From Epithemia pelagica (Eukaryota > Protista > Bacillariophyta), in NCBI GenBank assembly GCA_946965045.2, contig OX337237.1, positions 744,001 through 808,000 on the forward strand: 64,000 nt of DNA, written 5' to 3'. Positions 512 to 37,910 of the stretch are shown here, piece by piece. The translations under genes were made by a program, and so were the position numbers. Every line of letters begins with the position of its first letter. The first letter of the stretch is position 1. The notes under the pieces were generated by a model that was not told the origin of the DNA, did no database searches, and was given only the letters and a program-made list of their open reading frames with translations.

Positions 512-579
512 TTTAATAGCTGCTGTGTCGGTGGTCGTAGATTTGGTTTCGAATTTCTGATCGGATCAGATTATGAGAG

Positions 580-597
580 GAGCACCCCTAGCATAAA
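580..597 (+). repeat. Partial TIR-like motif matching the right end of element B
   Basis: GAGCACCCCTAGCATAAA matches the reverse complement of 13089-13106 (GAGCACCCCTAGTATATA) at 16/18. The terminal CAATAC is absent. Confidence 0.5.
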
Positions 598-952
598 AAA
601 TTCTGCCTAAAAGTGTCTCAATACCAACACCCCTGGCCTCAAAATTTCTTCCATATCGCCAGCCCGCACACCAAAAGACTGGCCGACTACTAATTTGCTC
701 GCCCGGCGTCCTTAAATAGAACATTTTTGGTTCCCACTACCACAACTCATTTCATTAGTAAAATGTCGTACCGGTATCATCATTTTCTCATGCGGTTATC
801 GTATCATCTTACGTATCATTGAGCTCCATCCAAGATGGCTCGGCATCGCATTGCAATCAACAATCAACAACAAGACACCCCATGTTCATTCCATCCCAGC
901 ACCATCGTTGTCTCACAACTAGGAACAAAGCAGTCTCTCCTTCTCCTACATC

Positions 953-2554
953 ATGTCGTCGGATTATGAGAATTCCGTTTCAGTGAATCAAATTCCTTTC
1001 TTTGATTGGACGTCACAAGATACCCTACGAATGGGCTCGTTTATTGCGATCCAATTGAAAAACCAGGATCCAAAGACGGTGACCATCGCTCGACTCGAAC
1101 AGCGACAACGCGAAGAAGATTCTCTCGATCCGGATGAACCTGTTGTCACCCACATCCGTCTACGCCTCTTCCCTCCGCTGTTTCCCACCAAGCCTATCGA
1201 TTGTCACCCGCGTATTCCATCTCATTCTATTCCCAAGATCCTCCATGGCTGCGGTTCCCAAAACGTCGAGCTTTACGAATCAAGGGAATGTGTTTGGATC
1301 AATGGCGAGATCCCCGATGACGAAGTCAAAATTCTCTTCCCCGCTTTTGTGTTTTCATTTGAGGAACTTGAGAAATCCGAAAACGGATGGGCCCACGGCA
1401 TCCATAATGTTTACTTTGCCCATTTCTGGCACAACAAGATCTACTCCTACACGGTGCGCGCAGAGAATCGTCTTGACCCTATCCCCAAAGGCACTGTTCT
1501 TGGGTTCATGAACAAGCACCCACTGTACAAACAGCCATCCAACCTAATCATTGCCCGCCGTTGTCAACACCATGCCATATGGGTTGGACTGTTTAGTATC
1601 CAGAAAGCAATCATCAAGATGTTGAATAAACGTGGCATGTCCAGTTCGAGCCGAGAAATTATTTCTCTTAATGTTGGATGCATCCCCTTGGAATGCATCC
1701 AATACATTTACTCCCTATCGAAGTTTGTGTCTCCCATCGACTGCCACCCAGTGACCCTTCGCGACTCCTTTCTTCATGTTGACTCGTCTCTCACTCGTCG
1801 CAAGCTTTCCATGTCCTTTGATGCCGGTGTTCTCCGTTTCAAGTCTATTTCAGACCTCAAGTTACTCCGGTCCATATTTGGACCAAGCTCGACGTATGGC
1901 TCTTCAGAGAAACGTCCTAATCTTTCGGACGGTAGCACTGGGACGACTCTTAAGCGAGGACATCATCTGTCTGTGATCTCCGGCCATGTCAACGACGATG
2001 CCAAAGACGAAAAGTTCAAGCGACGCTCGAAGGAACAGCGCGTGGACTTCTGTTTCTCGCCATTCAATGTACGTGTCACCGTTGGATACGAGAGATACGT
2101 ATACTCGCTCCGTGCATGTGGTTCTCTTCGACGCCCCTCACATTGCCCAACACTCAATACCATTCTCCGTGGCCAATCTACACAGACCTGTTCGGACACT
2201 CTCCAACCGATCAAACCAAGCTCTCCCACAACAGACCCATCTTCCGAAACGGGTACAGATTCCCATGACAACCTCGACGAATCAGAAGAAGCTGAAGAAT
2301 CTCCGTCAGATGAGTGCAACCCTCCTGTTCTACATCCTCCTGCTCTACAGAACATACAACTTGGTGATCAGTTTCTTGATGGTCAAACTGTTTACGAAGT
2401 AGTGACTGTCAACAAGACAGCTTCGAATCCTGTTTGTACTTGCCGTACTGTTGCCGGAAAGCACTACGATAAGCATCGTCCTGCTGAAGAACAGGACACT
2501 ATGGAACGAAAGGACATTGTCCAGTTGTTGATCGATATCCATGACTTTGCCTAA
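953..2554 (+). CDS. Transposon A partner protein, 533 aa, unknown function (N-terminal BAH-like segment suspected)
   Basis: Long ORF inside the TIRs, ending 50 bp from the transposase stop. Its C-terminus (MERKDIVQLLIDIHDFA) is homologous to the remnant in element B (LERDDMADLLHDIHEFA). Confidence 0.8.
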   Translation: MSSDYENSVSVNQIPFFDWTSQDTLRMGSFIAIQLKNQDPKTVTIARLEQRQREEDSLDPDEPVVTHIRLRLFPPLFPTKPIDCHPRIPSHSIPKILHGCGSQNVELYESRECVWINGEIPDDEVKILFPAFVFSFEELEKSENGWAHGIHNVYFAHFWHNKIYSYTVRAENRLDPIPKGTVLGFMNKHPLYKQPSNLIIARRCQHHAIWVGLFSIQKAIIKMLNKRGMSSSSREIISLNVGCIPLECIQYIYSLSKFVSPIDCHPVTLRDSFLHVDSSLTRRKLSMSFDAGVLRFKSISDLKLLRSIFGPSSTYGSSEKRPNLSDGSTGTTLKRGHHLSVISGHVNDDAKDEKFKRRSKEQRVDFCFSPFNVRVTVGYERYVYSLRACGSLRRPSHCPTLNTILRGQSTQTCSDTLQPIKPSSPTTDPSSETGTDSHDNLDESEEAEESPSDECNPPVLHPPALQNIQLGDQFLDGQTVYEVVTVNKTASNPVCTCRTVAGKHYDKHRPAEEQDTMERKDIVQLLIDIHDFA

Positions 2555-2603
2555 CCTTACATAATATAATCGCGTACCATACATATTAGTAAGACTTCTC
2601 TAA

Positions 2604-5600
2604 TTATGCTTTCTTAGTGTTAAAGTTCTTCTCCCATCCTGGAACAGGACCGTGAACAATCTCGACGTCATAGTTGTAGTCGTAGTCATCCCCAGCATAC
2701 TTGTCCCAAAGATGGTCGTCATCGAAGACCCATTTCTTTAACTCTTCTAGGTCTTTTGTATCTTCTTCCGTCCATCCTTTGGATTCCCTGGCCCTTCTTT
2801 CCGCTTCGGCATTGACAAATCGCCCAAACTGTACATCGCCCCCGTTATTTTCTACCCAGTTGTTCCATGTATCCATTTCATTGTCCGAAACTTTGGCAAT
2901 AGACTCAAGCATGTCATCGTATCCCCATCCCACCATAAAGATCATCCTGCGTTGGAGCCAGCGTGCCATTGGCTCCAACCTACTGCGACGCCCCTTACCA
3001 CCATGTGTAGCCCCTCCCCGTTGTGTACGATTGAAGTAAAATTGTTTAAAGACACTGTTAAAAGCTTCGTCACGAGACCATCAGGAAAGTTAGTAAACAA
3101 GCAAGACAATCCACTCCGATGCATCCATGTCTGATGATTACTCACCTTCCCAGCCTTGTTGGGCGTGGGCACTAAGATTCTTCCAATGACCAAGGTATTC
3201 CATGATGTGGCCACTACCAATGAGATGACAGTAGTTCGTAATGCCTCGTTCTCCATGTAGTTCTACTCATCTCCAAAAGAAAGCATCCGCCTCTCTTTGG
3301 TAGTCGTTGATCTCTTGGTCTGACAAGTTGGTTTTCTTGTTCACCAGTTGCATTGACTTCCTATAGTGACCCACGCTTTCCTTCCACAGACTCAGTCGTT
3401 CTTCGTCTACCTCGCACAAGTCAATGATCCTCTCCAGCCCCCCAATAACTTTCCGAATACGGACATTGTCCATACAGATAGTTATGAGCTGGTTTGTCTC
3501 CGTATCGAAAGGTACTCTCCACTGTCCTGGAAGATACTCTGTCCCAATCAAGTGCCTGTTTACCGCCTTGTTGATTGATGCGATGAAGTCTATGCATCTC
3601 GTCGATTCACATTCTGCTGTTAGCCACTCTAACTTCTCGTTCTTGGTATTTTCCAACCCGTCCTTGAGTATCATCGTAAGCAATTTTAGGCCCATACGGT
3701 TTTCCATGTGAAGCAAACATGGGACCGTATCCATCATCTGGACCAATGCTGTGGCCTTCTTTGAATCTCGGAATAGGCGAACCACCCTTGTTGCTTGATG
3801 GTAAGTCCATTCTTTCACATGACTTGCTTTCAGTCGTTCTTGACGTTCCTCTAAGGTCCCTCTGATTTCCAAATCTCGTGCCAACAAATCGTTGGTTAGT
3901 AGCTTGGCGTATTCTGTCCGCTTGGCTCGTGTTGCGACGGAAAGATCAAAATGAATACTCAACAGTTCCGACTTTTGTTTCTCCGAAGGAACATGCCTAG
4001 GATCTTCTTCGATCACCATCTTTGACTCTTTCCATATATCCTTCAGCTTTTCCGAAATCCCTGGCATCTCCTTTTCTAGAACCTTGACACTCCCTTCAAG
4101 TTCCGACAAATGAGAATCTGTGCAGATCTTGTGGTGTCGGCAAACCCAACCAGGTTGATTGTGATACCCGAGCTCATGACATATGGTGCATTCAGACACT
4201 GGTTGAGTTGGTAGGTGAAGTTCTCCACTCTTCGCAGCACACTTGGTGCAGGGATACGTCGCTTGGCCAGCCGCACCTCCGCGCCCGAGTAACTTCCATT
4301 TACAAGACATATCGCAATTCGTAGAGATCGTGATCTCTAGAATTCCGAATTTCGTGGGAAGTACTATCTTAGCCCCTTGTTCAATTTCGACCATCATCAT
4401 CCGGAACAGGGAACGCACGAGAGCCTCCGATTCGTGCTGACACACGCAAAGGATCGGAAATACACTATTCCGTGACTGTTTCAGAATGTTACAAACGTCA
4501 TTGAACTTGAGACCGCCTAACACATGGCCAAGATTTTTGGTGAACAACGCACCGTCCAAACTTTGTGACAGGTGAATCGATCGGGTCTTGGCATCACCGT
4601 GGATTAAATGGCCCGCCATCAATATAGCCGCCATCACATCCGCGGCTCGAAAAGTAAATCCTTCTGCTCCCGTTTCGGAATTTCGGAGGATTCTATACGG
4701 TGCAACTATTCGACCAAACCTCTCAACAACAGATGCACAGTCTTGCATGCAAGCACTACTGGGTAAGAGTGTCTGGGCGTAAGCAACACCTTCGGTCTCG
4801 ACATTTCGGAGTAACTCTATCCCCTGAAAATTGAGTGGACCGCCCGCAAGGTCCATGGCACGAAGAATCTTGAATGGATGAAAGACATTCTCCCGCACGT
4901 ATTTGCGGAAGACATTATAGGTGGCACGAAACAACAACCCACCGTGAATCCCTTTGTCGAGTAGCATTCGTCCGATCTCGATAAAAAAGGTCCCCGCGTG
5001 CTTGCTCTCCTTATCCATGCGCTTTACTTTCGATTCAATGAGCTCTCGAATGTAAGTCACAATCTTCTTCCTAGCCGTAGGAGTGTAACAAGATTTCGGA
5101 AGAGCTTCTTTATCTTTGAACTCTTTCAATTTCTTCTTGAGGTGAGAAATCTGAGACGACTTGCGTTTCGATTCCTTTCTTACTCGCTTCAGTTCTTCTT
5201 GTAATTGTCTGATTTTAATTCCTAATTCATTGTTCAGGTCGCATTCCTCAAATTCGGGAAATGGGGGGTCCTCGTCGTCGTCACAACAGGAGGAATCATC
5301 ATCTGGTTCATCTGGTTCATCTTCGAGGTCATCCTTGGCTAGCTCCTCATTTGTGTCGGGAACACGTTCGTTGGCACCGGATGGAACTTGAGGATCACAT
5401 CCATCACCTATTGCAGTAGATCCTGGGGCAGATGCAGCCGTATTGGTATTGTCTCTTGTCGTCGAGCTTGGTGAAGAAGCTTCGTTTGCATTTGGGCTTG
5501 GCGGTGTATCTTGAGTCGAGGGGATGGTAGAAGACTCATTGATGGTTTCTACAGAATTATCTACGTCAAATGAATCTACAGGTAAACGGGAGTCGACACC

Positions 5601-6311
5601 ATCTGGGTCGATATCGTCGTCAGGTTCCTCTCCTTCGGTGCATCTTGCGGAAAAAAGCATGTCTTCAATTGAGTTTTTCAATTTGTTGATTGCCATCTTC
5701 ACTTTCTTGAAACGACCTTTCTTCTTTTTCCTTCGGGGGGCAGCGGTTGGGAGACAAAAGAGCTCTGCATCTGGGGCTTCGGGGACATATCGAGATCTGG
5801 GATCTCGAAATGTCGGCCGAGAAAAGTTCGTATGTTGGGCCCGACATACATAGCGGCCGTTAATGGCTGCGTGGCGATTGATAAATTGCCCGGGACGGTG
5901 ACCTTCTTCCGTGTCTGCCGCATGGCATTGCGAGCAGAAGAAGAAACCAGGATGTTCTTCTTCCCTTGCGCGGCCGTAGACAGAGCAAGGTACGTGTTTC
6001 TTGCCCGATTCAAGAAAGTCCTTCAGGATTTTCGCGATACGCTTACGTTCGACAGTATTGTCTTCACATGTGACTTTGCTTTCTGACCTACGGGCACGGG
6101 TCTTCTTGTTTGGTGACGGTACCAGTTTGATATCCTCGTCAACCTTCTTGTTCATCTCTTCACGAGCGGTTGCCGATGGACCGGTGATTTTTTCTTGTTC
6201 TTCTTCTTTAGATTGCAAGCGCCGTGACTTGCGAATGGCAGGTTGGTCAGCCGTTGCTTTGTTTGTCGCAAGGTCATCTTGGAGGCGTCTCTTGTTGTTT
6301 GATTCTTCCAT
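2604..6311 (-). pseudogene. RAG1/Transib-like DDE transposase A; exons 6311-3146 and 3064-2604; TGA at 3267-3269 in place of Trp
   Basis: Motifs LSQSLDGA, PILCVCQHES, TNCDMS, YPCTKC, PCLLHME. Beyond the TGA the frame continues VELHGERGITNYCHLIGSGH...AQQGWE. Then an 81-bp GT-AG intron (3065-3145, TACTAAC branch point) and exon 2 AFNSVFKQFYFNRTQRGG. Paralog B has TGG at the stop position. Confidence 0.85.
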
Positions 6312-6832
6312 TGCGTCTTCGGAGGTACCTCCCTCAACAACATCGAAAGAGGTGCCTCTTGGATGGAGGAGATAGATGACGATGTTAAGGGAGATTAAAG
6401 ATTGATTAAGATGCGACTAGTCTGTGTTATATATTAATCAGGAATGGTTATTTTTTATGTTCAGAGGTGGGAGCGGCTCGTCCATTGGCAGCACAGAGCA
6501 CAAAATGGGATGAAAATTCCAATGAGAGATGTGGCGGTCATACGGAAATCGCTGTAACTCATTGAATTCTGGGTAGATTTGTTAACGGAAAAAAGGGTCT
6601 AATACTTGAAAAAACAAAGTATCTTGCGTAACAAACCGATAACAAATGTAGCCAGAAATGCGTTCATGGGAAGTGGGTAAAGATGGGCTTTGCGTTGGAA
6701 CCGAAATTTTGGGTCTTATATTTAACAAGATTGATCCCACTAAAATGCCTATAGTGACAGACAGGTTTCTGGTGTGACAGAGGGGAAAAATTGAGGTCGT
6801 CCGGCGCGCACTTATTCCAGGGGTGTTGGTAT

Positions 6833-8225
6833 TGTCATTCGGGTCGCTACGGATTGGGTACGTCATCATGACGTGTAAGGGACTAATGACCAAAGGGAAT
6901 GGAACGGTCATTATCGGTTACCTACTTACTGGTTTTATGCGTTGGATGTTATGGTTAATCCTACTTAGTCTTTCTTTGGAACGGATTCTATCAAGTAGAA
7001 TAAGACAGTTTATCAGACCCACCGTCTGGTAAAGGAGAACGAAGAATGGCTACATCGACACGATTGAATACGAAAACTGCAACTGCAAGTGGAAGGAGCG
7101 GAAGCGGAAGCGGAAGCGGAAGTGGAGGCGGAAGCGGAAATGGGAACCCCGGGGCCACGGGGAATGGGGAAGGAGATCGTACTTCACGCCATGGCGCGAG
7201 TATGGGAACGGGAGCGGGAGGGAGTGACCCGCCAGGAGGTGTACCTGGAACGAGAGGAGGAACCGCAGCAGGGACAGCTGCAGGAGCGGCCCCGGGAGTG
7301 GCTGGCGCAGGAAGCGCCGGAACGGGAGGTGCCGGCGGTGGCGCCGGTGCAGGAGGTGGTGCGCCGGGAGCAGGAGGAGGCGGACATGGTGGCGGTGCCG
7401 CAGGAGGCGGAGGCGGCGGCGGTGCTGCAGGAGGAGGTGCAGGAGGAGGTGCAGGCAGCGGCGCTGGAGGCGGAGGAGGAGGAGCAGGCGGTGGTGGCGC
7501 TGGAGGAGGAGGAGGAGGTGGAATACCTCCAGGCGTTCCAGCACCACCACCACCCCTCTCTGCTGTGGGAATGGCACTTAGTGTATGTGGCGCGAATCCT
7601 TTCGAAATATACGCCCTAGAACATACGGAACGCTTTAACACCCTAGAGTCATATGGAAGAATGACATCGGATGACGTGACCCAACTGGTGTCGAGGCTGG
7701 AAAAGCGCCCGTACCCGCACAACGTGGCAATTCCTTCAAGCGTCGTAAAGAACATTCAAGGAATGTGCTTCTGGTCAGCCAGAGCGCGTCGTCAAGGCCG
7801 TCCGCTTAACTACGGAGACTTCACAACCGCTGTCCTAGCTGAATCCCTGGACGCGATGGAGATCCAGTCGGAGAAATCCTCTGCACCTGATATTAAGCCC
7901 TCTGCCCTCAAGGAAGAAGAATGGGAGGACTGGAGTCAAGAGTTCCCAACGTACCTGTCGCAAATCTATGGAAAACAGAAGGCACCATTGGACTACGTGA
8001 TTCGTCCCGATTTAGCGCCTACCCATGTCTTTGCAAGCACTAGGGAACAAGAGCTCTATAGCTACCCTCTAGGTGGGCCGTACTTCAAAGAGGACAACAA
8101 GGAAGTATTTCGGCTATTGAGTGACCTTGTCAAGGATCAGCCTGCAACGTGGATTCAGCCTTTCCAGGCTTCACAAGATGGTCGACGCGCATGGATGGCA
8201 TTGGTCGATCATTTTGATTGGGGGG
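6833..8225 (+). mobile_element. Truncated copia (CoDi-like) LTR retrotransposon: ~175-bp LTR 6833-7007, putative PBS from 7008, 5' gag
   Basis: TGTC...GACA-bounded segment, then GTTTATCAGACCCACCG, then an ORF with WEDWSQEFPTYLSQIYG..PLDYVIR and DGRRAWMALVDHFD, typical of diatom copia gag. No pol and no 3' LTR. Confidence 0.7.
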
Positions 8226-8353
8226 GAGGACAGAGTGTTTGTCGAGTCATTGGTGGCAAACTGTACGAACCCACAGTCGACAAAGAGAACCAGGAAATCT
8301 TGGAACGTGATGACATGGCGGATCTACTCCATGACATCCACGAATTCGCCTAA
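7046..8353 (+). CDS. Chimeric ORF: Gly-rich copia gag N-terminal part fused in frame to the last ~41 codons of the element-B partner gene
   Basis: Gag motifs stop at a G-run (~8220-8228). The downstream QSVCRVIGGKLYEP...DIHEFA aligns with the C-terminus of 953-2554. Confidence 0.7.
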   Translation: MATSTRLNTKTATASGRSGSGSGSGSGGGSGNGNPGATGNGEGDRTSRHGASMGTGAGGSDPPGGVPGTRGGTAAGTAAGAAPGVAGAGSAGTGGAGGGAGAGGGAPGAGGGGHGGGAAGGGGGGGAAGGGAGGGAGSGAGGGGGGAGGGGAGGGGGGGIPPGVPAPPPPLSAVGMALSVCGANPFEIYALEHTERFNTLESYGRMTSDDVTQLVSRLEKRPYPHNVAIPSSVVKNIQGMCFWSARARRQGRPLNYGDFTTAVLAESLDAMEIQSEKSSAPDIKPSALKEEEWEDWSQEFPTYLSQIYGKQKAPLDYVIRPDLAPTHVFASTREQELYSYPLGGPYFKEDNKEVFRLLSDLVKDQPATWIQPFQASQDGRRAWMALVDHFDWGGGQSVCRVIGGKLYEPTVDKENQEILERDDMADLLHDIHEFA

Positions 8354-8438
8354 GCATCCATGAATTTGCCATAGCATCCATGAATTTGCCAAAGAACTAC
8401 ATACGAGAACAAGAAATCACAAAGCACCACATTCCATA

Positions 8439-11400
8439 TTAGTAATCTTTCAATTTGCCACTACTCTTGACTCCGTCAGTACTACTGCTTTGTTCCTGTA
8501 GAATTCCCCCCTCTGTCGGTGCATCCAAGACAATAGGCTGTCCTTTCGCATCAGTGACCGGACCATGTACGATATCACATTCTTCTTCCTCCTCCTCATA
8601 CCATTGACGAGGTTCCAAGAATTCCCACTTATCCAATTCCTCTAAATCACGGGTGTCTTGTTCCGACCAACCTGGTCGTTTCATGGCCAGTTGTTTGGCT
8701 TCCTCGGTTAGAAACTTACAATACTAAACACTCCCACCTGAATCTCGTACCCAGTTTGTCCATTCCACTAGTTCGTCATCTTCCACAGTATTCAAGTCGT
8801 TCATGATCTCGTCGTATTTGTATCCACACATAAACACCATCCTTCTCTGAAGCCAGCGAGCCATTGGCTCGAGACGACTCCTTTTCCCCTGCCCTTGATT
8901 AGTAGCACCGCCGCGTTGGGTTCTGGAAAAGTAAAAGCGCTTGAATAAGCTATTGAAAGCTACCGTCATTGTAAATGGTTAGACACCAAAGAGACATGGG
9001 CGATCACGGTCGATCCACTCACCTTCCCATCCTTGTTGGGCATGTGAACTGAGATTCCGCCAATGCAGAAGATACTCAGTCACATGCCCACTGCCTATCA
9101 TATGCGCATAGTTTGTGATTCCTCGTTCACCATGCAAGTCAACCCATCTCGAAAAAAACTCGTCCGCAACACGTTGATATTCGTAGATTTCCTCATCTGT
9201 CATTTCGTTCTTATTGTTCACGAGCTTCATAGACTTGGCATAATATTCAACACTTTCGATCCATGTCTTTCGTCTGCTCTCATCTGGGCAACACAGATCA
9301 ATCAGAATCTTGAATCCATTCACTATCCTTCGGATTCGGACATTATCCATGCAGATCGTTGTTATTGCCTTTGCTTTCTCGTCGTACGGCATTTTCCATT
9401 GCGTCGGGAATTCCTCAGATCCAAGAACAAGAGTATTAAGATTCCTGTTGACTGTATCTTGAAACTCTTGTATCCTCGCGTCCATGCCCCCCTCAGCTTC
9501 TTTATTGATCCAACTAAGCTCATCGCTCTTCGTATACTCCAGGCCTTCTCGGAGAATCATTGTTAGTAGCTTCAAGCCCATTTGGTTCTCCATATGAAGG
9601 ATGCAAGGGATTGCATCCATCATATAAACCAAGGCCGTTGTCTTTTTTGAGACTTTGAATTGATCCTTGACTCTCTGTGCTTGATGATACCACCACTCCT
9701 TGACGTGTGATGATTTTAGCCCTTTCTGTCGATCCTCCAAAGAACCCGAGATATCGAGGCCTCTAGCAGTCAAGTCATTCGTCAAAATCTTTGCGTATTC
9801 TCTCCGTTGCTCTAAAGAGGCCACACTCAAGTCGAAATGAACACTTTGCAAACTCCCTTTCTCCATTCCCGACGCGACACATCTAGGATCTTGCTGTATA
9901 ATGACTTGCGATTTAGCCCAGATCGATTTCATCGTCTTCGCTATGATAGGCATCTCCTTGATGAATTCAGTTATATCCTCCTCAACTTGTTGGATGTGTT
10001 CTTTAGAACAGATCTTGTGGTGTCGACAGATCCAGTTCTTTCTCTCGTCGTTGCCTAGCTTAACACAGATCTTGCATTCGGAAGCCGGTTGTGTCTCAGC
10101 ATGTAACTCACCACTTCGAACGACACATTTAGAACAAGGGTAGGTAACTTGTTGAGCTGCCCCACCTCGGCCGAACAGTTTCCATTCACAGCTCATGTCG
10201 CAGTTTGTGGAAATCGTGAGTTGTAAAATCCCAAATTTCGTGGGAAGTACAATCTTCGCCCCTTCCTTGATCTCTACCATCATCATCCGGAACAGAGACC
10301 TGACCAATGACTCGGACTCTTTCTGACACACGCATAAGATCGGGAACACGCTGTGCCGTGATTGGCCCAGTAGATTGCAGATGTCGTTGAATTTCAGTCC
10401 ACCCAGAACATGTCCGAGGTTCTTTGTAAACAAAGCCCCGTCCAAGCTCTGTGATAGGTAGATTGATCGTTCCTTGGCTTCTCCGCCCATCAAATTACCT
10501 GCCACCAGGATTGCTGCCATCACATCCGCCGCACGAAACGTGAAGCCTTCTGCTCCTGTTTCTTTGTTCCGTAGCATTCTGTAAGGGCATAGTAGGGCCC
10601 CGAATCTGTTCACTTCTGCCGCACAGTTTTGCATGCAAGAGGTGCTTGGCAGTAGAGTCTGTTGATACAGCACTCCGTCAGTTTCTACGGATCGTAGATA
10701 CTCCAACCCGCGGAAGTTTAGTGGTCCTCCCGCCAAGTCCATTGCGCGTAGGATCTTGTACGGCGTTAAAACATTTTCTCTAACGTACTTGCGGAACACA
10801 TTGTAGGTGGCTTTGAACAATTGCCCGCCGTGTATTGTCTTGTCGAGTAGCAAAGACCCGATGTCCGTAAAAAAAGATACTGCTTGATGACTTGTTGTGT
10901 CCATCTTTGATACCTTGGAAGTGATGAACTTGCGTAGGTAAGTCAGCAGAGTCGTCTTATCTTCTGGGTCGTAACATGACTTTGGTAGTTTGTCCGTTTC
11001 ATTCTTCTCCTGTTGTGCTAGCTTTGCTTCGCGGAGCTCCTCTCGAGTTTCCTTGACGATCTTTTCCCAATACCGAAGCCTCTCACTTTTCTTCTTGGAC
11101 TGCAGACGACAGTCCTTCAGCTTCGAAAGCATCGAGGTGAGTTTTTCTTTGAGGTGAACAACTTGTTTAATTAACTTCTCACGCTCTCTATCCTCTATTG
11201 TGTTGTCCTCGTGTGGACAATCTTCCTCTTGCAGGTTCATTTCAGTTGCCCTCAGCCATTCGTCAAGGTCGGTTTCGTCATCGTCCTCTTCTTCGTCATC
11301 TACCACTGTCTCTACGATTGGGCTACTGTGAACGGATTCTCTTGATTCCGGTGTCATTCCAATGCCTGTATTGGGTTCGGCATTGGGTTCTGTCCTTGAA

Positions 11401-12614
11401 GACTTGGTGTCGTTCTTCTTCGTGTCGTCGGAGGCAACCGTCGTTTCGTCCATGTTGACTGGATTACTTGGCGGATTTGTTGACTTAGGAGGATCATCCT
11501 CTACTGTGGTGTTGGTGGATGAAGGGAAGGGGGGTACTAGATCGACTGAAGCTGGTTCTGGAGCTTGTTCAGCAATCTCGGGAAGAGTTTTGTCCTTGTC
11601 CAAGTCTCTGACATTTTCAGTTGGGGCAGGTAATTGCTTGTCACGCTTGGCTCGTCGGATTTTGGTCCTTTTGATAGGCTCGGGTTCTTCAATAGGCTGG
11701 CAAAATAATTCAGCCGGAGGCGGTTCGGGTGCGTATTGAGAATTCTTGTGTCGGAAGGTTGGGCTCCACATGTTGGTGTGTTCTGCTGTGCATTTATAGC
11801 GGCCGCCGACGATGGTCCGATTAATATAATGGCCAGGCCGTGAACCCTGTTCTTGATCAGCCTTGTCGCAGTTGTTACAAAAGAAGTAACCCCTGTGTGC
11901 CTGTTCTCGGTCGCGACCGTAAACCAAGCACGGTACAAATTCTGATTTAAGGAACGTCTTACAGATTTCTGCAATTCTTTTTCGCTCTACAGAGTTGGAT
12001 TCGCATGGAACTTCAGATGCACGTCTTTGTGCTCGAGTTTGCATGTTCGGCGACGCTTGAAGTTTTAAATCTCTCTCGATCTGTTGGATTTCTTCGGGAG
12101 ATGGTTGGCGACAACCGTCGGGTTCGTCACTGGTTGAAGTGGAGCTGGTAGTCTGGCAAAGCTGACAGGGTGCTTCGTCAGTCAACTGTTTTGCAGGACT
12201 GGTTACTGGATGATGGTCTTCATTATTGGGCGACTCTTGGAGATCGACAACGCCATCAATCTGCGAATTTTCTTCTTGAGATGATGGACGAAGTCCATTT
12301 GGTTCAACACTTGTTGGGGCCAATCCGGCAATTCGGCAAGATTTGCGAGATGGTTCTGCAATCGGAGGGTTAAGCGATGCTTTGGGAACAATGTCTCTCC
12401 CAATCTGCTGACGGTTTTCTTGAGGTAATGGGCAAGGTCCATCGAATTCGACACTTGTTGCTGCCAGTCCGGCAATCCGGCGAGATTTTCGAGATGGTTC
12501 TGCAACCGGAGGGACTTCTGAAGTGTGATGGGCCTGGTTTGGGCGCTTCTTCGATGCACGGGTAGGCAAAGTGTATGTAAGATGAGATAAAGCCGCTGTT
12601 ATTGTGAAATACAA
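8439..12614 (-). CDS. RAG1/Transib-like DDE transposase B; exons 12614-9023 and 8959-8724 (TAG); homologous acidic tail continues to 8439
   Basis: D in SLDGA (10440-10442), D in NCDMS (10197-10199), YPCSKC, PCILHME, ITNYAHMIGSGH, E in QQGWE (9024-9026). 63-bp GT-AG intron (8960-9022) at the same position and phase as in A. The TAG at 8724-8726 aligns with Gln in A and lies after the catalytic core. Confidence 0.85.
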
Positions 12615-12949
12615 GTCGTTATCTCATGGGCATACCTCCAGGGTCCATGTTGGAGGGAGGTTGGTCGGCAGGTGGTAGATGAGATCAAAGCACGATTAAT
12701 AGGCGACTACTATGTTATATATCATACAACGCTGGATATATTTTATACTCAAGACTGGGGTGGCGCGCATTGGGCTAGGGGAGGGGCCTGGAAAACCAAT
12801 GAATGAACAAGGCCGCTGTATTGTCGTCCGTATAACTTTACGAATATTTGCTACTTTTGTCAAGTAAGTATACCGTTGGATTCTTGAGACAAAAAGGAAT
12901 CAGATGCAAGTGTTATCTGACAATTGTAGCCATTAATGGGTGAGTGGTA

Positions 12950-13112
12950 GTGCGTTGAAAATGGGTCAGTCTTTTGAGGCCAAAAATTGGGTCTTATATT
13001 TAACAAAAATTCATCCATACAATACTCCAGAGTGACAGAAGCGTTTCTGGTCTGTCTGTTGTACGTAGTTTCGTCATCCCGCGCGCACTATATACTAGGG
13101 GTGCTCGTATTG
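12950..13112 (-). mobile_element. Right end of transposon B (TIR 13095-13112 plus subterminal region)
   Basis: Reverse complement reads CAATACGAGCACCCCTAG. The subterminal blocks (GGGTCTTATATTTAACAA, AGTGACAGA..GTTTCTGG, GCGCGCACT) are shared with the right end of A (6700-6834), and the similarity ends just after GTATTG. Confidence 0.75.
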
Positions 13113-13156
13113 TATTGAATCTCTGTCTGTGAATGTTGGTGTCAACGTCCAGTGAT

Positions 13157-15884: not shown

Positions 15885-15929
15885 TTAAATAGTTGCTTGC
15901 ATATCACATGTATTCTTTCTTGACATTTA

Positions 15930-27140: not shown

Positions 27141-29958
27141 GTACCCTCGGGCCGTATGAAATCCATACTCCCGATTGTCGTAGGGTTCCGGCAAGGGTTC
27201 CTTGCTCAGGGCCTGTGTCCAGGGAATGTGTTTTTGAGTTCTGAAATCGAGTTTCGAGTTTCGAGGTTGAGCTAATAGGTTATGGTCCTCTTGAAAACTC
27301 GAAAACACAACCTCGAATCCCCCAAATCTTGGCAATCCCCCAACGACCTTGCCAAGATTCTGAAATCGAGTTTCGAGTTTCGAGGTTTGCAAAGAGCCCC
27401 ACGCGCTCCTACAAAACCCACCTTTCAGCCGCCGGGCTCTCTGTCTCTCATTTCGATCTCTCCGACAACAACAACGAGGCAATCTCTCTTGTCCATCATA
27501 GACAATAGTACAATAGTAGCACAATGATTGATGTGATATAAGTAGGAGCTTCTCTAGAAAATGAGCAAGTATTATTAACCTGTCGCTGCCATGGAAGTAA
27601 TGGTCACAACCACTGTCAATGGTCAAAAGCAAATAGTTCTCATCTCTCCATAGATGACATGGTTACGGAACAAAGCCCGCATCCTGCTCCATGGACGGGC
27701 TCTACAAATATTCTACCTTCTCCCGTTATGCAATGTGATATTAGGAATTAGGAGTACTCAAGCGACATTTGTTTGTCGTCATTGTCAATTGCCGTTGTGC
27801 TCGTTCATGCGCCGGTAGGGGGGAAGCATGGGAGTGCACGAGTATTGAAAAATAAAACTCGAAACTCGAAACTCGAAAATACAGTTTTTACCTGGACACG
27901 TACATCCAGATCGTTGTTTCAAGGTAGGGACAGAGCCCCACCTCAAAACTCGAAACTCGATTTCAGACCTCGAAAACACATTCCCTGGACACAGGGCCTC
28001 AGGGCTCAGGGCCTGTGTCCAGGGAATGTGTTTTTGAGTTCTGAAATCGAGTCAATAGGTTATGGTCCCCTTGAAAACTCGAAAACACAACCTCGAATCC
28101 CCCAAATCTTGGCAATCCCCCAACGACCTTGCCAAGATTCTGAAATCGAGTTTCGAGTTTCGAGGTTTGCAAAGAGCCCCACGCGCTCCTACAAAACCCA
28201 CCTTTCAGCCGCCGGGCTCTCTGTCTCTCATTTCGATCTCTCCGACAACAACAACGAGGCAATCTCTCTTGTCCATCATAGACAATAGTAGCACAATGAT
28301 TGATGTGATATAAGTAGGAGCTTCTCTAGAAAATAAGCAAGTATTATTAACCTGTCGCTGCCATGGAAGTAATGGTCACAACCACTGTCAATGGTCAAAA
28401 GCAAATAATTCTCATCTCTCCATAGATGACATGGTTACGGAACAAAGCCCGCATCCTGCTCCATGGACGGGCTCTACAAATATTCTACCTTCTCCCGTTA
28501 TGCAATGTGATATTAGGAATTAGGAGTACTCAAGCGACATTTGTTTGTCGTCATTGTCAATTGCCGTTGTGCTCGTTCATGCGCCGGTAGGGGGGAAGCA
28601 TGGGAGTGCACGAGTATTGAAAAATAAAACTCGAAACTCGAAACTCGAAAATACAGTTTTTACCTGGACACGTACATCCAGATCGTTGTTTCAAGGTAGG
28701 GACAGAGCCCCACCTCAAAACTCGAAACTCGATTTCAGACCTCGAAAACACATTCCCTGGACACAGGGCCTCAATTCTTCCGCTTGTGCCTTGACATGAG
28801 AAAACATCTGGAATAGTCACAAAACACAAACACACAACAACAAAGAAAAAGAGAACGTGGCATGTGTCAGAGTGACTTTCTCGTGTGCGCTGTCCGCAAC
28901 CAACCAACCACAGCGACCACCAAGTGCACACAGATAGGCACAGGATCGTGAGGACGTACCGGATGACTAAAGTATCGTTCTCCAAAACTGGGCAAGACAC
29001 AGACGACGGTTATATTTGCCGATTCCGGTCGTTGACAGACTTGCAAGGCGGCCGCGACATTCGCACCCGAACTCACGCCCACGGGCAAGCCTTTAAGCCA
29101 GAGTTGTTTGGTCATGTTCATGGCGAGCATGGAATGAATGGGTACCACCTCATCAATCAAGTCCAAATCCAATACTTTGGGAATCACACCGGCCCCCATG
29201 CCTTGAATGAAATGAGGACCAATCTCTTGCAAGGGTTCTCCTCCCTTGGCTTGGGTAATCAACATTTGTTCCCGAGGTTCCACGGCAATGGCTTGCAACT
29301 TCGGATTCTTGGGAGGACAGTCGTGTTCGGCCGAGCCCTTAATGTATTGCGTGACACCGGTCAGTGTGCCACCCGTCCCAACGCCAGCCACAAAAATATC
29401 AATGGTTCCCGCCGTATCTCTCCAAATTTCGGGACCCGTCGACTCTCGATGGGCTTTGGTATTGGCTGGATTGTCAAATTGTCGCAACAAGTAGCCGGTG
29501 CCCTTACAATCGGCCACGACTTGTTCGGCCTTGGCCAGGGCTTCGACCATGCCAGCCTTTTTGGGCAGAAGGACGACATTGGCACCCAGTGCCAAGAGCA
29601 TGAGGCGACGTTCCATGGTCACTGATTCCGGCATGACAATGGTACATTTATAGTCACGTTCGCGTGCCAACATGGCAATGGAGATGCCCGTATTACCCGA
29701 CGTGGCTTCCACCAAAGTCGTTTCCCCTCGTATAATCAATCCCTTGGCTTCGGCATCGTCCAACATGGTACGAGCAATCCGATCCTTGACCGAATTACAG
29801 GCATTGAAGGCCTCCAATTTGCCATAGAATTTGCACCCATCGGCGAGTTTTTCGTCGGAAAAGACGTGATTGCCCAAATCCAACAAGGGCGTTTTGCCAA
29901 TCAAGTCGGAGGGACAAGAGGCCACATTCAAGGATGTACCGGATTCTCCATTCATCAT
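27138..29958 (-). CDS. cysK: Cysteine synthase CysK2 copy b; exon 1 29958-28960; last exon interrupted by two MITEs (5' part ~28805-28771, 3' part 27208-27138)
   Basis: CNSVKDR, ATSGNTG, GVGTGGT, GPHFIQG. The spliced last exon MFSHVKAQAEEL continues as SKEPLPEPYDNREYGFHTARGY only on the far side of the MITEs. Confidence 0.9.
27209..27998. mobile_element. PIF/Harbinger-like MITE, copy 1 (790 bp)
   Basis: 25-bp TIR GG(G/C)CCTGTGTCCAGGGAATGTGTTT, 3-bp TSD TCA, AAACTCG subterminal heptamer repeats. Confidence 0.85.
28009..28770. mobile_element. PIF/Harbinger-like MITE, copy 2 (762 bp)
   Basis: Near-identical to 27209-27998, separated from it by TCA-GGGC-TCA; TCA follows at 28771-28773. Confidence 0.85.
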
Positions 29959-30399
29959 TTTAATAGCTGCTGTGTCGGTGGTCGTAGATTTGGTTTCGAA
30001 TTTCTGATCGGATCAGATTATGAGAGGAGCACCCCTAGCATAAAAAATTCTGCCTAAAAGTGTCTCAATACCAACACCCCTGGCCTCAAAATTTCTGCCA
30101 TATCGCCAGCCCGCACACCAAAAGACTGGCCGACTACTAATTTGCTCGCCCGGCGTCCTTAAATAGAACATTTTTGGTTCCCACTACCACAACTCATTTC
30201 ATAAGTAAAATGTCGTACCGGTATCATCATTTTCTCATGCGGTTATCGTATCATCTTATGTATCATTGAGCTCCATCCAAGATGGCTCGGCATCGCATTG
30301 CAATCAACAATCAACAACAAGACACCCCATGTTCATTCCATCCCAGCACCATCGTTGTCTCACAACTAGGAACAAAGCAGTCTCTCCTTCTCCTACATC

Positions 30400-31995
30400 A
30401 TGTCGTCGGATTATGAGAATTCCGTTTCAGTGAATCAAATTCCTTTCTTTGATTGGACGTCACAAGATACCCTACGAATGGGTTCGTTTATTGCGATCCA
30501 ATTGAAAAACCAGGATCCAAAGACGGTGACCATCGCTCGACTCGAACAGCGACAACGCGAAGAAGATTCTCTCGATCCGGATGAACCTGTTGTCACCCAC
30601 ATCCGTCTACGCCTCTTCCCTCCGCTGTTTCCCACCAAGCCTATCGATTGTCACCCGCGTATTCCATCTCATTCTATTCCCAAGATCCTCCATGGCTGCG
30701 GTTCCCAAAACGTCGAGCTTTACGAATCAAGGGAATGTGTTTGGATCAATGGCGAGATCCCCGATGACGAAGTCAAAATTCTCTTCCCCGCTTTTGTGTT
30801 TTCATTTGAGGAACTTGAGAAATCCGAAAACGGATGGGCCCACGGCATCCATAATGTTTACTTTGCCCGTTTCTGGCACAACAAGATCTACTCCTACACG
30901 GTGCGCGCAGAGAATCGTCTTGACCCTATCCCCAAAGGCACTGTTCTTGGGTTCATGAACAAGCACCCACTGTACAAACAGCCATCCAACCTAATCATTG
31001 CCCGCCGTTGTCAACACCATGCCATATGGGTTGGACTGTTTAGTATCCAGAAAGCAATCATCAAGATGTTGAATAAACGTGGCATGTCCAGTTCGAGCCG
31101 AGAAATTATTTCTCTTAATGTTGGATGCATCCCCTTGGAATGCATCCAATACATTTACTCCCTATCGAAGTTTGTGTCTCCCATCGACTGCCACCCAGTG
31201 ACCCTTCGCGACTCCTTTCTTCATGTTGACTCGTCTCTCACTCGTCGCAAGCTTTCCATGTCCTTTGATGCCGGTGTTCTCCGTTTCAAGTCTATTTCAG
31301 ACCTCAAGTTACTCCGGTCCATATTTGGACCAAGCTCGACGTATGCTCTTCAGAGAAACGTCCTAATCTTTCGGACGGTAGCACTGGGACGACTCTTAAG
31401 CGAGGACATCATCTGTCTGTGATCTCCGGCCATGTCAACGACCGAAGACGAAAAGTTCAAGCGACGCTCGAAGGAACAGCGCGTGGACCTCTGTTTCTCG
31501 CCATTCAATGTACGTGTCACCGTTGGATACGAGAGATACGTATACTCGCTCCGTGCATGTGGTTCTCTTCGACGCCCCTCACATTGCCCAACACTCAATA
31601 CCATTCTCCGTGGCCAATCTACACAGACCTGTTCGGACACTCTCCAACCGATCAAACCAAGCTCTCCCACAACAGACCCATCTTCCGAAACGGGTACAGA
31701 TTCCCATGACAACCTCGACGAATCAGAAGAAGCTGAAGAATCTCCGTCAGATGAGTGCAACCCTCCTGTTCTACATCCTCCTGCTCTACAGAACATACAA
31801 CTTGGTGATCAGTTTCTTGATGGTCAAACTGTTTACGAAGTAGTGACTGTCAACAAGACAGCTTCGAATCCTGTTTGTACTTGCCGTACTGTTGCCGGAA
31901 AGCACTACGATAAGCATCGTCCTGCTGAAGAACAGGACACTATGGAACGAAAGGACATTGTCCAGTTGTTGATCGATATCCATGACTTTGCCTAA
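30400..31995 (+). pseudogene. Partner gene A, duplicate, frameshifted near 31345-31445
   Basis: Split into 30400-31422 and 31432-31995 by small deletions relative to 953-2554; may be assembly error. Confidence 0.75.
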
Positions 31996-32044
31996 CCTTA
32001 CATAATATAATCGCGTACCATACATATTAGTAAGACTTCTCTAA

Positions 32045-35000
32045 TTATGCTTTCTTAGTGTTAAAGTTCTTCTCCCATCCTGGAACAGGACCGTGAACAA
32101 TCTCGACGTCATAGTTGTAGTCGTAGTCATCCCCAGCATACTTGTCCCAAAGATGGTCGTCATCGAAGACCCATTTCTTTAACTCTTCTAGGTCTTTCGT
32201 ATCTTCTTCCGTCCATCCTTTGGATTCCCTGGCCCTTCTTTCCGCTTCGGCATTGACAAATCGCCCAAACTGTACATCGCCCCCGTTATTTTCTACCCAG
32301 TTGTTCCATGTATCCATTTCATTGTCCGAAACTTTGGCAATAGACTCAAGCATGTCATCGTATCCCCATCCCACCATAAAGATCATCCTGCGTTGGAGCC
32401 AGCGTGCCATTGGCTCCAACCTACTGCGACGCCCCTTACCACCATGTGTAGCCCCTCCCCGTTGTGTACGATTGAAGTAAAATTGTTTAAAGACACTGTT
32501 AAAAGCTTCGTCACGAGACCATCAGGAAAGTTAGTAAACAAGCAAGACAATCCACTCCGATGCATCCATGTCTGATGATTACTCACCTTCCCAGCCTTGT
32601 TGGGCGTGGGCACTAAGATTCTTCCAATGACCAAGGTATTCCATGATGTGGCCACTACCAATGAGATGACAGTAGTTCGTAATGCCTCGTTCTCCATGTA
32701 GTTCTACTCATCTCCAAAAGAAAGCATCCGCCTCTCTTTGGTAGTCGTTGATCTCTTGGTCTGACAAGTTGGTTTTCTTGTTCACCAGTTGCATTGACTT
32801 CCTATAGTGACTCACGCTTTCCTTCCACAGACTCAGTCGTTCTTCGTCTACCTCGCACAAGTCAATGATCCTCTCCAGCCCCCCAATAACTTTCCAAATA
32901 CGGACATTGTCCATACAGATAGTTATGAGCTGGTTTGTCTCCGTATCGAAAGGTACTCTCCACTGTCCTGGAAGATACTCTGTCCCAATCAAGTGCCTGT
33001 TTACCGCCTTGTTGATTGATGCGATGAAGTCTATGCATCTCGTCGATTCACATTCTGCTGTTAGCCACTCTAACTTCTCGTTCTTGGTATTTTCCAACCC
33101 GTCCTTGAGTATCATCGTAAGCAATTTTAGGCCCATACGGTTTCCATGTGAAGCAAACATGGGACCGTATCCATCATCTGGACCAATGCTGTGGCCTTCT
33201 TTGAATCTCGGAATTGGCGAACCACCCTTGTTGCTTGATGGTAAGTCCATTCTTTCACATGACTTGCTTTCAGTCGTTCTTGACGTTCCTCTAAGGTCCC
33301 TCTGATTTCCAAATCTCGTGCCAACAAATCGTTGGTTAGTAGCTTGGCGTATTCTGTCCGCTTGGCTCGTGTTGCGACGGAAAGATCAAAATGAATACTC
33401 AACAGTTCCGACTTTTGTTTCTCCGAAGGAACATGCCTAGGATCTTCTTCGATCACCATCTTTGACTCTTTCCATATATCCTTCAGCTTTTCCGAAATCC
33501 CTGGCATCTCCTTTTCTAGAACCTTGACACTCCCTTCAAGTTCCGACAAATGAGAATCTGTGCAGATCTTGTGGTGTCGGCAAACCTAACCAGGTTGATT
33601 GTGATACCCGAGCTCATGACATATGGTGCATTCAGACACTGGTTGAGTTGGTAGGTGAAGTTCTCCACTCTTCGCAGCACACTTGGTGCAGGGATACGTC
33701 GCTTGGCCAGCCGCACCTCCGCGCCCGAGTAACTTCCATTCACAAGACATATCGCAATTCGTAGAGATCGTGATCTCTAGAATTCCGAATTTCGTGGGAA
33801 GTACTATCTTAGCCCCTTGTTCAATTTCGACCATCATCATCCGGAACAGGGAACGCACGAGAGCCTCCGATTCGTGCTGACACACGCAAAGGATCGGAAA
33901 TACACTATTCCGTGACTGTTTCAGAATGTTACAAACGTCATTGAACTTGAGACCGCCTAACACATGGCCAAGATTTTTGGTGAACAACGCACCGTCCAAA
34001 CTTTGTGACAGGTGAATCGATCGGGTCTTGGCATCACCGTGGATTAAATGGCCCGCCATCAATATAGCCGCCATCACATCTGCGGCTCGAAAAGTAAATC
34101 CTTCTGCTCCCGTTTCGGAATTTCGGAGGATTCTATACGGTGCAACTATTCGACCAAACCTCTCAACAACAGATGCACAGTCTTGCATGCAAGCACTACT
34201 GGGTAAGAGTGTCTGGGCGTAAGCAACACCTTCGGTCTCGACATTTCGGAGTAACTCTATCCCCTGAAAATTGAGTGGACCGCCCGCAAGGTCCATGGCA
34301 CGTAGAATCTTGAATGGATGAAAGACATTCTCCCGCACGTATTTGCGGAAGACATTATAGGTGGCACGAAACAACAACCCACCGTGAATCCCTTTGTCGA
34401 GTAGCATTCGTCCGATCTCGTTAAAAAAGGTCCCCGCGTGCTTGCTCTCCTTATCCATGCGCTTTACTTTCGATTCAATGAGCTCTCGAATGTAAGTCAC
34501 AATCTTCTTCCTAGCCAAAGGAGTGTAACAAGATTTCGGAAGAGCTTCTTTATCTTTGAACTCTTTCAATTTCTTCTTGAGGTGAGAAATCTGAGACGAC
34601 TTGCGTTTCGATTCCTTTCTTACTCGCTTCAGTTCTTCTTGTAATTGTCTGATTTTAATTCCTAATTCATTGTTCAGGTCGCATTCCTCAAATTCGGGAA
34701 ATGGGGGGTCCTCGTCGTCATCACAACAGGAGGAATCATCATCTGGTTCATCTGGTTCATCTTCGAGGTCATCCTTGGCTAGCTCCTCATTTGTGTCGGG
34801 AACACGTTCGTCGGCACCGGATGGAACTTGAGGATCACATCCATCACCTATTGCAGTAGATCCTGGGGCAGATGCAGCCGTATTGGTATTGTCTCTTGTC
34901 GTCGAGCTTGGTGAAGAAGCTTCGTTTGCATTTGGGCTTGGCGGTGTATCTTGAGTCGAGGGGATGGTAGAAGACTCATTGATGGTTTCTACGGAATTAT

Positions 35001-35749
35001 CTACGTCAAATGAATCTACAGGTAAACGGGAGTCGACACCATCTGGGTCGATATCGTCGTCAGGTTCCTCTCCTTCGGTGCATCTTGCGGAAAAAAGCAT
35101 GTCTTCAATTGAGTTTTTCAATTTGTTGATTGCCATCTTCACTTTCTTGAAACGACCTTTCTTCTTTTTCCTTCGGGGGGCAGCGGTTGGGAGACAAAAG
35201 AGCTCTGCATCTGGGGCTTCGGGACATATCGAGATCTGGGATCTCGAAATGTCGGCCGAGAAAAGTTCGTATGTTGGGCCCGACATACATAGCGGCCGTT
35301 AATGGCTGCGTGGCGATTGATAAATTGCCCGGGACGTGACCTTCTTCCGTGTCTGCCGCATGGCATTGCGAGCAGAAGAAGAAACCAGGATGTTCTTCTT
35401 CCCTTGCGCGGCCGTAGACAGAGCAAGGTACGTGTTTCTTGCCCGATTCAAGAAAGTCCTTCAGGATTTTCGCGATGCGCTTACGTTCGACAGTATTCTC
35501 TTCACATGTGACTTTGCTTTCTGACCTACGGGCACGGGTCTTCTTGTTTGGTGACGGTACCAGTTTGATATCCTCGTCAACCTTCTTGTTCATCTCTTCA
35601 CGAGCGGTTGCCGATGGACCGGTGATTTTTTCTTGTTCTTCTTCTTTAGATTGCAAGCGCCGTGACTTGCGAATGGCAGGTTGGTCAGCCGTTGCTTTGT
35701 TTGTCGCAAGGTCATCTTGGAGGCGTCTCTTGTTGTTTGATTCTTCCAT
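32045..35749 (-). pseudogene. RAG1/Transib-like transposase A, duplicate, with several 1-bp frameshifts plus the shared TGA
   Basis: Fragments 35105-35749, 33586-35286, 33127-33549 and 32708-33250 are collinear with 3267-6311. Same TGA (32708-32710) and same intron. Confidence 0.85.
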
Positions 35750-37825: not shown

Positions 37826-37910
37826 GCATCCATGAATTTGCCATAGCATCCATGAATTTGCCAAAGAACTACATACGAGAACAAGAAATCACAAAGCACC
37901 ACATTCCATA

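Follow-up and report, generated by a model that had tools for sequence, protein, structure and literature searches.

Does this locus of the diatom Epithemia pelagica hold a transposon of the RAG1 type, and with which partner gene does its transposase travel? RAG1, which assembles antibody genes, forms together with RAG2 the textbook case of a transposase tamed jointly with a chromatin-reading partner. The locus lies in a stretch of 64,000 nt (assembly GCA_946965045.2, contig OX337237.1, positions 744,001 to 808,000 of the forward strand), which is called the window below and to which all coordinates refer. The original prediction, made from the letters of this DNA alone, had placed here two transposases, A and B, of a RAG1/Transib-like family. 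Our analysis indicates with considerable confidence that the region carries two diverged, inactivated copies of a mobile two-gene DNA transposon family having a RAG1-fold transposase, a chromatin-reader partner, and a 1-bp target duplication, and that this family adds a new lineage to the CMCT clade (CACTA/EnSpm-Mirage-Chapaev-Transib/RAG1). The family occurs in diatoms and in other organisms sampled in metagenomes and public sequencing runs.

Two open reading frames (ORFs) on the minus strand, A (3267-6311, 1014 aa) and B (8979-12614, 1211 aa), share 51% identity across ~1000 aa. The parts of the two genes are as follows:

3146..6311, minus strand: exon 1 of transposase A, with an in-frame TGA at 3267-3269
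3065..3145, minus strand: intron of transposase A, 81 nt, GTGAGT...TACTAAC...AG, phase 1
2604..3064, minus strand: exon 2 of transposase A, AFNS...ARWLQRR, then an acidic tail
9023..12614, minus strand: exon 1 of transposase B, the true start being uncertain
8960..9022, minus strand: intron of transposase B, 63 nt, GTGAGT..CTAAC..AG, phase 1
8439..8959, minus strand: exon 2 of transposase B, with a premature TAG at 8724-8726; the frame runs on to 8439

Both phase 1 introns lie immediately 3' of the QQGWE codons and have a GTGAGT donor, a CTAAC/TACTAAC branch motif, and an AG acceptor. Their removal joins QQGWE|AFNS, and the identical sequence is found in an uninterrupted ORF in the intronless paralogues P0014-P0016 and P0018-P0025. 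Two diverged transposases with a conserved intron were confirmed, and all of the motifs that had been listed for them were found in the predicted order. The genes and coordinates proposed earlier hold, while the in-frame stop present in each gene had gone unmentioned.

In the transposases of the family, which are ~1000-1200 aa long, a Cys/His finger at the N-terminus is followed by a coiled coil and by a catalytic core of ~650 aa with the RAG1 fold and domain order. The N-terminal pattern, conserved in alignment A1 (residues ~225-290 of B), reads C..(F/Y)G..R......FFC..C...D...R(Y/F).C.A.H.....PT and is followed by the coiled coil; it had no Pfam match. This part is presumably responsible for DNA binding or dimerisation. 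A tandem duplication of 140 nt (74% identity) was seen at 12230-12513 within the N-terminal coding region of transposase B.

For the analysis of the core, 40 sequences were aligned (alignment A2) and residues 355-1019 of P0014, a correctly spliced paralogue 46% identical to B, were modelled with AlphaFold. The model had a predicted local distance difference test score (pLDDT) of 86 and a predicted template-modelling score of 0.80. A Foldseek search against the PDB showed that the best 49 matches were all RAG1, BbRAGL or HzTransib (top E 2.9e-9), followed by the P element with an E value of 0.066. VIA-align, which is independent of Foldseek, superposed residues 1-652 of the model on residues 461-1024 of RAG1 with a Z score of 17.9 over 486 residues; the scores of BbRAGL, HzTransib, the P element, ISCth4, and Hermes were 17.2, 12.0, 9.6, 7.3, and 5.6, respectively. 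Among the Swiss-Prot models, RAG1 proteins were the sole matches (E ~1e-9), and the protein language-model neighbours were clusters with the RAG1_RNase_H, pre-RNase_H, ZnC2, and ZnH2 families. No better structural match to another DDE superfamily, such as the P element or the hAT transposase Hermes, was found.

Eight residues, D130, D211, C232, C235, H413, H577, H583, and E603, are invariant or nearly so in the 40 sequences and follow each other in the RAG1 order. In the model, the first strand of a beta-beta-beta-alpha-beta-alpha unit carries D130, D211 comes immediately behind the fourth strand, and E603 is part of a helix, which is the RNase-H arrangement. The spacing between D and C is 21 residues and that between H and E is 20, as compared with 19 and 20 in RAG1. 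As modelled, the transposase has a RAG1/Transib-type fold, so that the predicted RAG1-like core was borne out at the level of the fold, and the D/D/E, C..C, H, and H..H residues proposed for it proved to be invariant across the family with RAG1-like spacing. The resemblance to RAG1, RAG1L (ProtoRAG, BbRAGL), and Transib extends to the domain order (DDBD-PreR-RNaseH-ZnC2-ZnH2-CTD) across ~490 residues and to the order D, D, C(2)C, H, H..H, E.

Several results count against this reading and have to be set beside it. The modelled protein was P0014 and no protein of the window. The D/D/E and Cys/His residues are inferred to cluster in three dimensions. In Pfam scans of all window ORFs and of the 40 core sequences (E<=5), the family matched no transposase or RAG1 family. 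Searches of the PDB sequences with phmmer and hmmsearch, for which B, full-length and core profiles, and the sub-profiles RNaseH-ZnC2 and ZnH2-E were used (E<=5-10), returned only noise. The sequencing runs carrying the sequence behave as DNA, with even depth across the intron and zero splice joints, and are uninformative on splicing. Both copies in the window are pseudogenes.

The family itself is large. A word-indexed search returned 44 close relatives, and an exhaustive profile search of 50%-identity clusters returned 3811 at E<=1e-3, of which 592 were at E<=1e-30.

Which lineage does a transposase of this fold belong to? Kojima (2025) described the C(2)C, single-H, and H(3-4)H motifs as common to EnSpm/CACTA, Mirage, Chapaev, Transib, Plavaka, ESTA, Lanisha, and RAG1, which make up the CMCT clade (PMC12730594). 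Members of this clade have CA..TG termini and target duplications of 2-5 bp (PMC12730594). The diatom family has 5'-CA..TG-3' termini as well (CAAT...ATTG in 8/8 complete elements). Since the C(2)C/H/H..H signature and the CA..TG ends are common to the whole clade (PMC12730594), CMCT is the defensible placement, and the fold evidence likewise puts the family in this clade with RAG1 as its closest solved structure. The family thus fits best within this clade as a lineage of its own that is new, whereas a specific sisterhood to RAG/Transib is unproven. Like ESTA, another CMCT member, which also has a short duplication (TA), the family is tied to RAG1 by remote-homology tools only. It differs from the members described so far in its 1-bp duplication, which falls outside the reported 2-5 bp, and in its His pair: C232-x2-C235, H413, and H577-x5-H583 are invariant, but the spacing of the last pair is 5 instead of 3-4. 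In addition, no member's Pfam model matches it, and its diatom host range and BAH/Tudor partner are undescribed for any lineage.

The original prediction went further and proposed an algal branch of the RAG/Transib superfamily. The fold and the architecture support this, but membership of the superfamily does not follow, as there is no profile link, no CAC end, and no 5-bp duplication. It is doubtful that the family is a true sister or an inner branch of Transib/RAGL whose partner replaced or preceded RAG2L. RAG1 and BbRAGL are the best structural matches and cover the core over its full length (DDBD to CTD), the genes are convergent as in ProtoRAG, the ends are asymmetric, and a stramenopile RAGL is known from Aureococcus (PMC9435367), all of which speak for such a branch. 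However, no similarity to RAG1, RAG1L or Transib is detectable in sequence, the ends are CAATAS in contrast to CAC(A/T)(G/A)TG, and the duplication is of 1 bp instead of 5 bp. The family also has H(5)H where RAG1 has H(4)H, as well as an extra CxxC..CxH finger past the ZnC2-like motif. No heptamer/nonamer or fixed spacer pair was seen at the family ends, and the second boxes of the two ends differ (GCGCGC vs A/T-rich). Moreover, Tao et al. screened >680,000 genomes for RAG1L, RAG2L, and Transib and found among stramenopiles only the RAGL of Aureococcus; their supplement names no diatom (PMC9435367).

That element, AanRAGL, is a RAG-like transposon of a pelagophyte, such as the original prediction had mentioned. 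Its RAG1L and RAG2L genes point in one direction, its ends are of the CAC type, and its target duplications measure 5 bp (Tao et al. 2022, PMC9435367). The diatom family shares with it the stramenopile algal host, the two-gene composition, the RAG1-fold transposase, and the asymmetric ends, but lacks a recognisable RAG1L, RAG2L, the co-directional genes, the CAC ends, and the 5-bp duplication.

It is also quite unlikely that the family is a divergent member of CMC proper (CACTA/EnSpm, Mirage or Chapaev) for which RAG1 ranks first because no CMC structure has been solved. In an Atlas shape search, clusters bearing Transposase_21 (443-481 aligned residues) and DUF1280 reached template-modelling (TM) scores of 0.55-0.59, RAG1 clusters reached 0.55-0.60, and one DUF1280-carrying cluster ranked above the RAG1 clusters, which speaks for CMC and against a preference for RAG1. 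The CAATAC/CAATAG ends are one base from CACTAC, the target duplication is short and in this resembles the 2-3 bp known for CMC more than the 5 bp known for Transib, the elements have several genes and long subterminal regions, and the C(2)C and H..H motifs are common to the whole clade (PMC12730594). Yet the root-mean-square deviation (rmsd) in the same search was lower for RAG1 clusters (3.9-4.3 Å) than for CACTA-type clusters (4.8-5.2 Å), and the language-model neighbours of the family were RAG1 domains and not Transposase_21. The Pfam models Transposase_21, DUF1280, and DUF1258 matched none of the 40 members even at E<=5. The ends (CAATA vs CACTA), the 1-bp duplication, and the BAH partner are likewise foreign to CMC. 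The hAT, P, and MULE superfamilies do not fit: the family lacks an 8-bp-class duplication, and the structural scores of the P element and Hermes are lower than that of RAG1.

The second gene of element A is the following:

953..2554, plus strand: partner gene of A, 533 aa, with a BAH-like N-terminal domain, a conserved middle, an acidic/Ser-rich hinge, and a C-terminal SH3-like (Tudor/chromobarrel-like) domain

This gene is convergent with transposase A, and partners of ~460-590 aa stand in the same way to the transposase across the intact elements. In loci of the same assembly (L001, L002, L004, L005, L006, and L009), full-length partner homologues convergent with the transposase were found with E values of 1e-68 to 1e-172, and in L003 the partner survives as remnants. 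Weaker homologues (profile E 1e-9 to 3e-11) adjoin transposases from four other samples (L007, L008, L010, and L011), which are 28-35% identical to B. Altogether, the partner is convergent in 12 of the 13 intact or decayed copies and present as remnants in one, with transposase identity going down to 28%, and every intact copy examined has the convergent two-gene layout within inverted ends. The proposed ProtoRAG-style arrangement thus recurs in A, L001, L002, and L004-L011, and the linkage of the two genes in other copies, which was to be checked, was confirmed. The codon differences between A and L009 (9 synonymous vs 10-14 non-synonymous) were read as not purely neutral.

The structure of the partner was also modelled. 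For residues ~12-200, where the pLDDT of the model is 60-80, the top 50 Foldseek matches and the top 19 VIA-align matches were all BAH domains (Z 10.1-6.0), with alignments of 126-139 residues and an rmsd of ~3.1-3.5 Å; Atlas BAH/PHD clusters matched the model as well. Residues 461-533 (pLDDT 82-89) form a small barrel of three to four strands and a helix. Less favourable to this assignment are the overall pLDDT of 60, the absence of a match of Pfam BAH to the partner, and the weak matches of the barrel (Z ~5), which include SAWADEE, the Tip60 chromobarrel, the UHRF1 tandem Tudor, and the SMN Tudor but also other small barrels. Structure searches with the mixed alpha/beta partner model matched no Kelch propeller. 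Hence, the partner models as a BAH domain plus a Tudor/chromobarrel-like domain, in contrast to the Kelch propeller and PHD finger of RAG2, and the predicted non-RAG2 partner was borne out.

The PHD finger of RAG2 reads H3K4me3. The partner of the diatom family would be a functional parallel to it, as it is predicted to carry a chromatin-reader module too. In PIF/Harbinger and En/Spm elements, the transposase also needs or travels with a second, non-nuclease protein encoded by the element; these partners are Myb/SANT-like or TnpA DNA binders, whereas the gene described here is convergent and its product is predicted to be a histone/nucleosome reader.

Next to transposase B, a gene of different origin was found:

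7046..8353, plus strand: chimeric ORF, a Gly-rich copia-gag-like gene continued in frame from ~8231 by the final ~40 codons of the canonical partner

The match of this ORF to the partner family is confined to its last ~37-58 residues, and the gag-like part runs to ...HFDWGGGQ. Therefore, this neighbour was rejected as a diverged partner, and the earlier statement that each transposase ends tail-to-tail with a homologous partner gene stands for A and fails for B. In the gag-like family of diatom proteins (7046-8230; P0195-P0206), a Gly/Ala-rich N-terminus is combined with a copia-gag-like domain. Many of its paralogues are encoded on large contigs that also carry the transposases, and one named homologue is from Epithemia clementina. 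Three tandem 20-nt units (CATCCAYGAATTYGCC) at 8335-8394 lie at and just past the stop of the chimeric ORF; they repeat the stretch coding for the conserved partner C-terminus ...IHEFA.

The gag-like gene that has overwritten the partner slot of B could be taken to mean that the partner is a passenger, namely a chromatin gene taken up from the host that contributes nothing to transposition, and DNA transposons of this clade do often capture genes, such as TET/JBP in fungi (PMC12730594). This is very improbable, since the position, orientation, and homology of the partner are kept in 12 of the 13 copies, including those with 28-35% identical transposases from other samples, and the sole copy with a replaced partner is otherwise defective. 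The retained partner would instead have an accessory function in transposition. Judging from its reader-like domains, it may link the cutting step or the choice of target with chromatin, or else bind the subterminal boxes.

To define the borders of the elements, the ends of A and B were compared with those of other copies. The relevant features of the window are as follows:

619..6834, minus strand: element A, a complete two-gene copy of 6216 bp with perfect 18-bp inverted ends and a 1-bp duplication (T at 618, T at 6835)
619..636, plus strand: partner-side terminal inverted repeat of A, CAATACCAACACCCCTGG
6817..6834, minus strand: transposase-side terminal inverted repeat of A, a perfect inverted match to 619-636
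~6803-6811, minus strand: GC box of A, GTGCGCGCC, 24-32 nt inside the transposase-side end
13091..13112, minus strand: transposase-side end of B, CAATACGAGCACCCCTAGTATA, with the same sequence as the L001 end
578..613, plus strand: remnant of a B-type partner-side end, 36 bp, with the outer CAAT gone, 5 bp from element A

The perfect repeat confirmed that A sits between 18-bp inverted repeats, as predicted. The DNA homology between A and B has exact boundaries at 6834-6835 and 13112-13113, and the window contains the degenerate terminal pattern 6 times, compared with 0.02 expected by chance. Eight complete elements of 5356-6272 bp were available (window A, L001, L002, L003, L004, L005, L007, and L009), all of which have the ends 5'-CAATA(G/C)(G/C)A(G/A)C...ATTG-3' with inverted repeats of ~18-24 bp. 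For L006, L008, and L010 a full inverted-repeat pair was not established, the partner-side end of L008 being AAAT. The subterminal boxes are asymmetric: a GCGCGC box lies ~25-35 nt inside the transposase-side end, where it is kept in A, B, L001, L003, and L007, and A/T-rich boxes lie on the partner side.

In all eight complete elements, the single base flanking the element is the same on both sides (a/a, c/c, t/t, c/c, a/a, a/a, g/g, c/c), for which the probability by chance is ~1.5e-5. No multi-base duplication was found outside CAAT/ATTG in any of the elements, and a target duplication of 5 bp or another multi-base length was accordingly rejected. For the empty site of A, public contigs were aligned on window positions 560-6500. 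A contig of runs X2 and X3 tracks the left flank to position 620 and continues TTCGGGTCGCTACGG, so that the empty site reads GTGTC-T-CATTCGGG, with one T and no CAATTG. This supports the 1-bp duplication, although a lone empty-site contig could in principle be a repair product, which is a point on the other side. As a control for the reading of duplications in this window, a hAT element at 13561-20403 showed the expected 8-bp duplication. We conclude that the target duplication is 1 bp. The idea that CAAT lies outside the element, which would have inserted into a CAATTG target and duplicated AT, can hardly be right and was rejected: the CAAT...ATTG form of every end would also be expected from such a palindromic target and the B-type remnant at 578 has no CAAT, but the empty-site contig reads GTGTCTCATTCGGG with no CAATTG, and the AT model does not predict the matching base outside CAAT/ATTG in 8/8 elements.

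Multiple independent insertions of the family were observed. A copy of the A type at L009:4480-10573 is 98.6-99% identical to window A, has both genes intact, and lies in unrelated flanks; the homology between the two starts exactly at CAAT and stops exactly at ATTG. Several distinct flanks adjoin position 619 in public contigs, and loose contig ends at 578 and 611-613 point to intact B-type ends elsewhere in the genome. Contigs of X2 and X3 were also seen to join position 2897 to 4000, omitting 1102 bp over the 3' ends of both genes; the shorter side of this joint is 21 nt, and the joint may represent an internally deleted, non-autonomous derivative of the A type. L005:1-1410 contains a second A-type copy with a transposase-side end at 1410 that matches the one of window A exactly; an unrelated member of the family is 3 kb away in this locus, and the elements may cluster in the genome.

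The family probably moves by DDE cut-and-paste transposition, with the CAATAS ends and the asymmetric subterminal boxes as the presumed recognition sites of the transposase. A transposase dimer would cut at the element boundary, CAAT/ATTG, by DDE chemistry. Flank hairpin formation is typical of RAG1, Transib, and hAT, and nicking followed by such hairpin formation is probable here too, judging from the fold alone. Reinsertion would then proceed with a 1-bp stagger. By analogy with the binding of H3K4me3 by the RAG2 PHD finger, the partner may be an obligatory accessory that ties the transposase to a chromatin state or licenses it there; alternatively, it may recognise the asymmetric subterminal boxes.

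The state of the two window copies was examined at their stop codons and flanks. The TGA of transposase A (3267-3269) corresponds to TGG (Trp) in B and in the intact copy L009, and contigs of run X3 have T>C at position 3267, that is, at this stop. The TAG of transposase B (8724-8726) is CAG in A. On the partner side of B the intact end is absent, and only the 36-bp remnant at 578-613 is left. Since homology to the B-type end stops at 613 and does not resume beyond A, it follows that B was rearranged, and the nesting of A in an otherwise intact B was rejected. A is inactivated by the nonsense codon, and B has the late stop and has lost its partner gene and its partner-side end. The whole block is present twice:

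29448..42629, strand not assigned: the complete A+B block a second time, at 99.2% identity and with both stop codons

This block corresponds to 1-13156 of the window, and its copy of A has extra breaks. Because the duplicate carries the same stops, A and B are dead copies within a segmental duplication, and the sequence comparison indicates that they were later copied passively in this duplication of at least 13 kb.

What does such a family add to the known systems? No literature linking Transib or RAG-like transposons with diatoms was found in full-text searches, which likewise turned up no DNA transposon described as having a 1-bp duplication. The lineage is real and mobile, belongs to the RAG1-fold transposons (CMCT clade), has a chromatin reader other than RAG2 as its partner and an unusual 1-bp duplication, and is apparently undescribed. 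We hold more tentatively, at slightly less than an even chance, that it represents a previously undescribed lineage at the level of a superfamily whose nuclease depends on a chromatin reader (BAH + Tudor-like) encoded by the element. To our knowledge, the partners known so far for RAG1-fold enzymes are all Kelch/PHD RAG2-like proteins. If this holds, the pairing of a RAG1-type cutter with a histone reader would have arisen at least twice or would predate RAG2, and the 1-bp duplication would imply a strand-transfer geometry that is absent from the solved RAG/Transib complexes. Being large and in part still intact, this algal family offers a second, independent system in which the recruitment of a histone reader by this nuclease can be tested. 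It extends the range of the CMCT clade with regard to hosts, end sequence, and target duplication. Annotation based on Pfam/HMMER is blind to it despite thousands of clusters; therefore, it is likely to be unannotated or mislabelled in diatom genomes.

Other mobile elements were found in the window beside the two copies. The hAT element used as a control contains a 1325-aa ORF at 15930-19907 matching Dimer_Tnp_hAT and has the inverted ends CAGGGTTGTGTAGT and the 8-bp duplication ACGCGAAC. It is present in the first copy of the block only; the corresponding site of the second copy (~42792-42809) has ~20 extra bases, which may be an excision footprint. An insertion of ~237 bp at 13157-13394, resembling a miniature inverted-repeat transposable element (ends GAATAAA...TTTATTC) and flanked by direct repeats of 6-7 bp, (C)AGTGAT, is also confined to the first copy. 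A 741-aa ORF at 24695-26920 has a strong piggyBac-type transposase domain, DDE_Tnp_1_7 (E 8e-54). Finally, a gene for a pyridoxal-phosphate-dependent enzyme (PALP, E ~1e-58) occurs in four copies, direct and inverted, at 21508-23109, 28867-29958, 44340-45482, and 52292-53494, and the transposons of the window are thus located inside a duplicated gene cluster.

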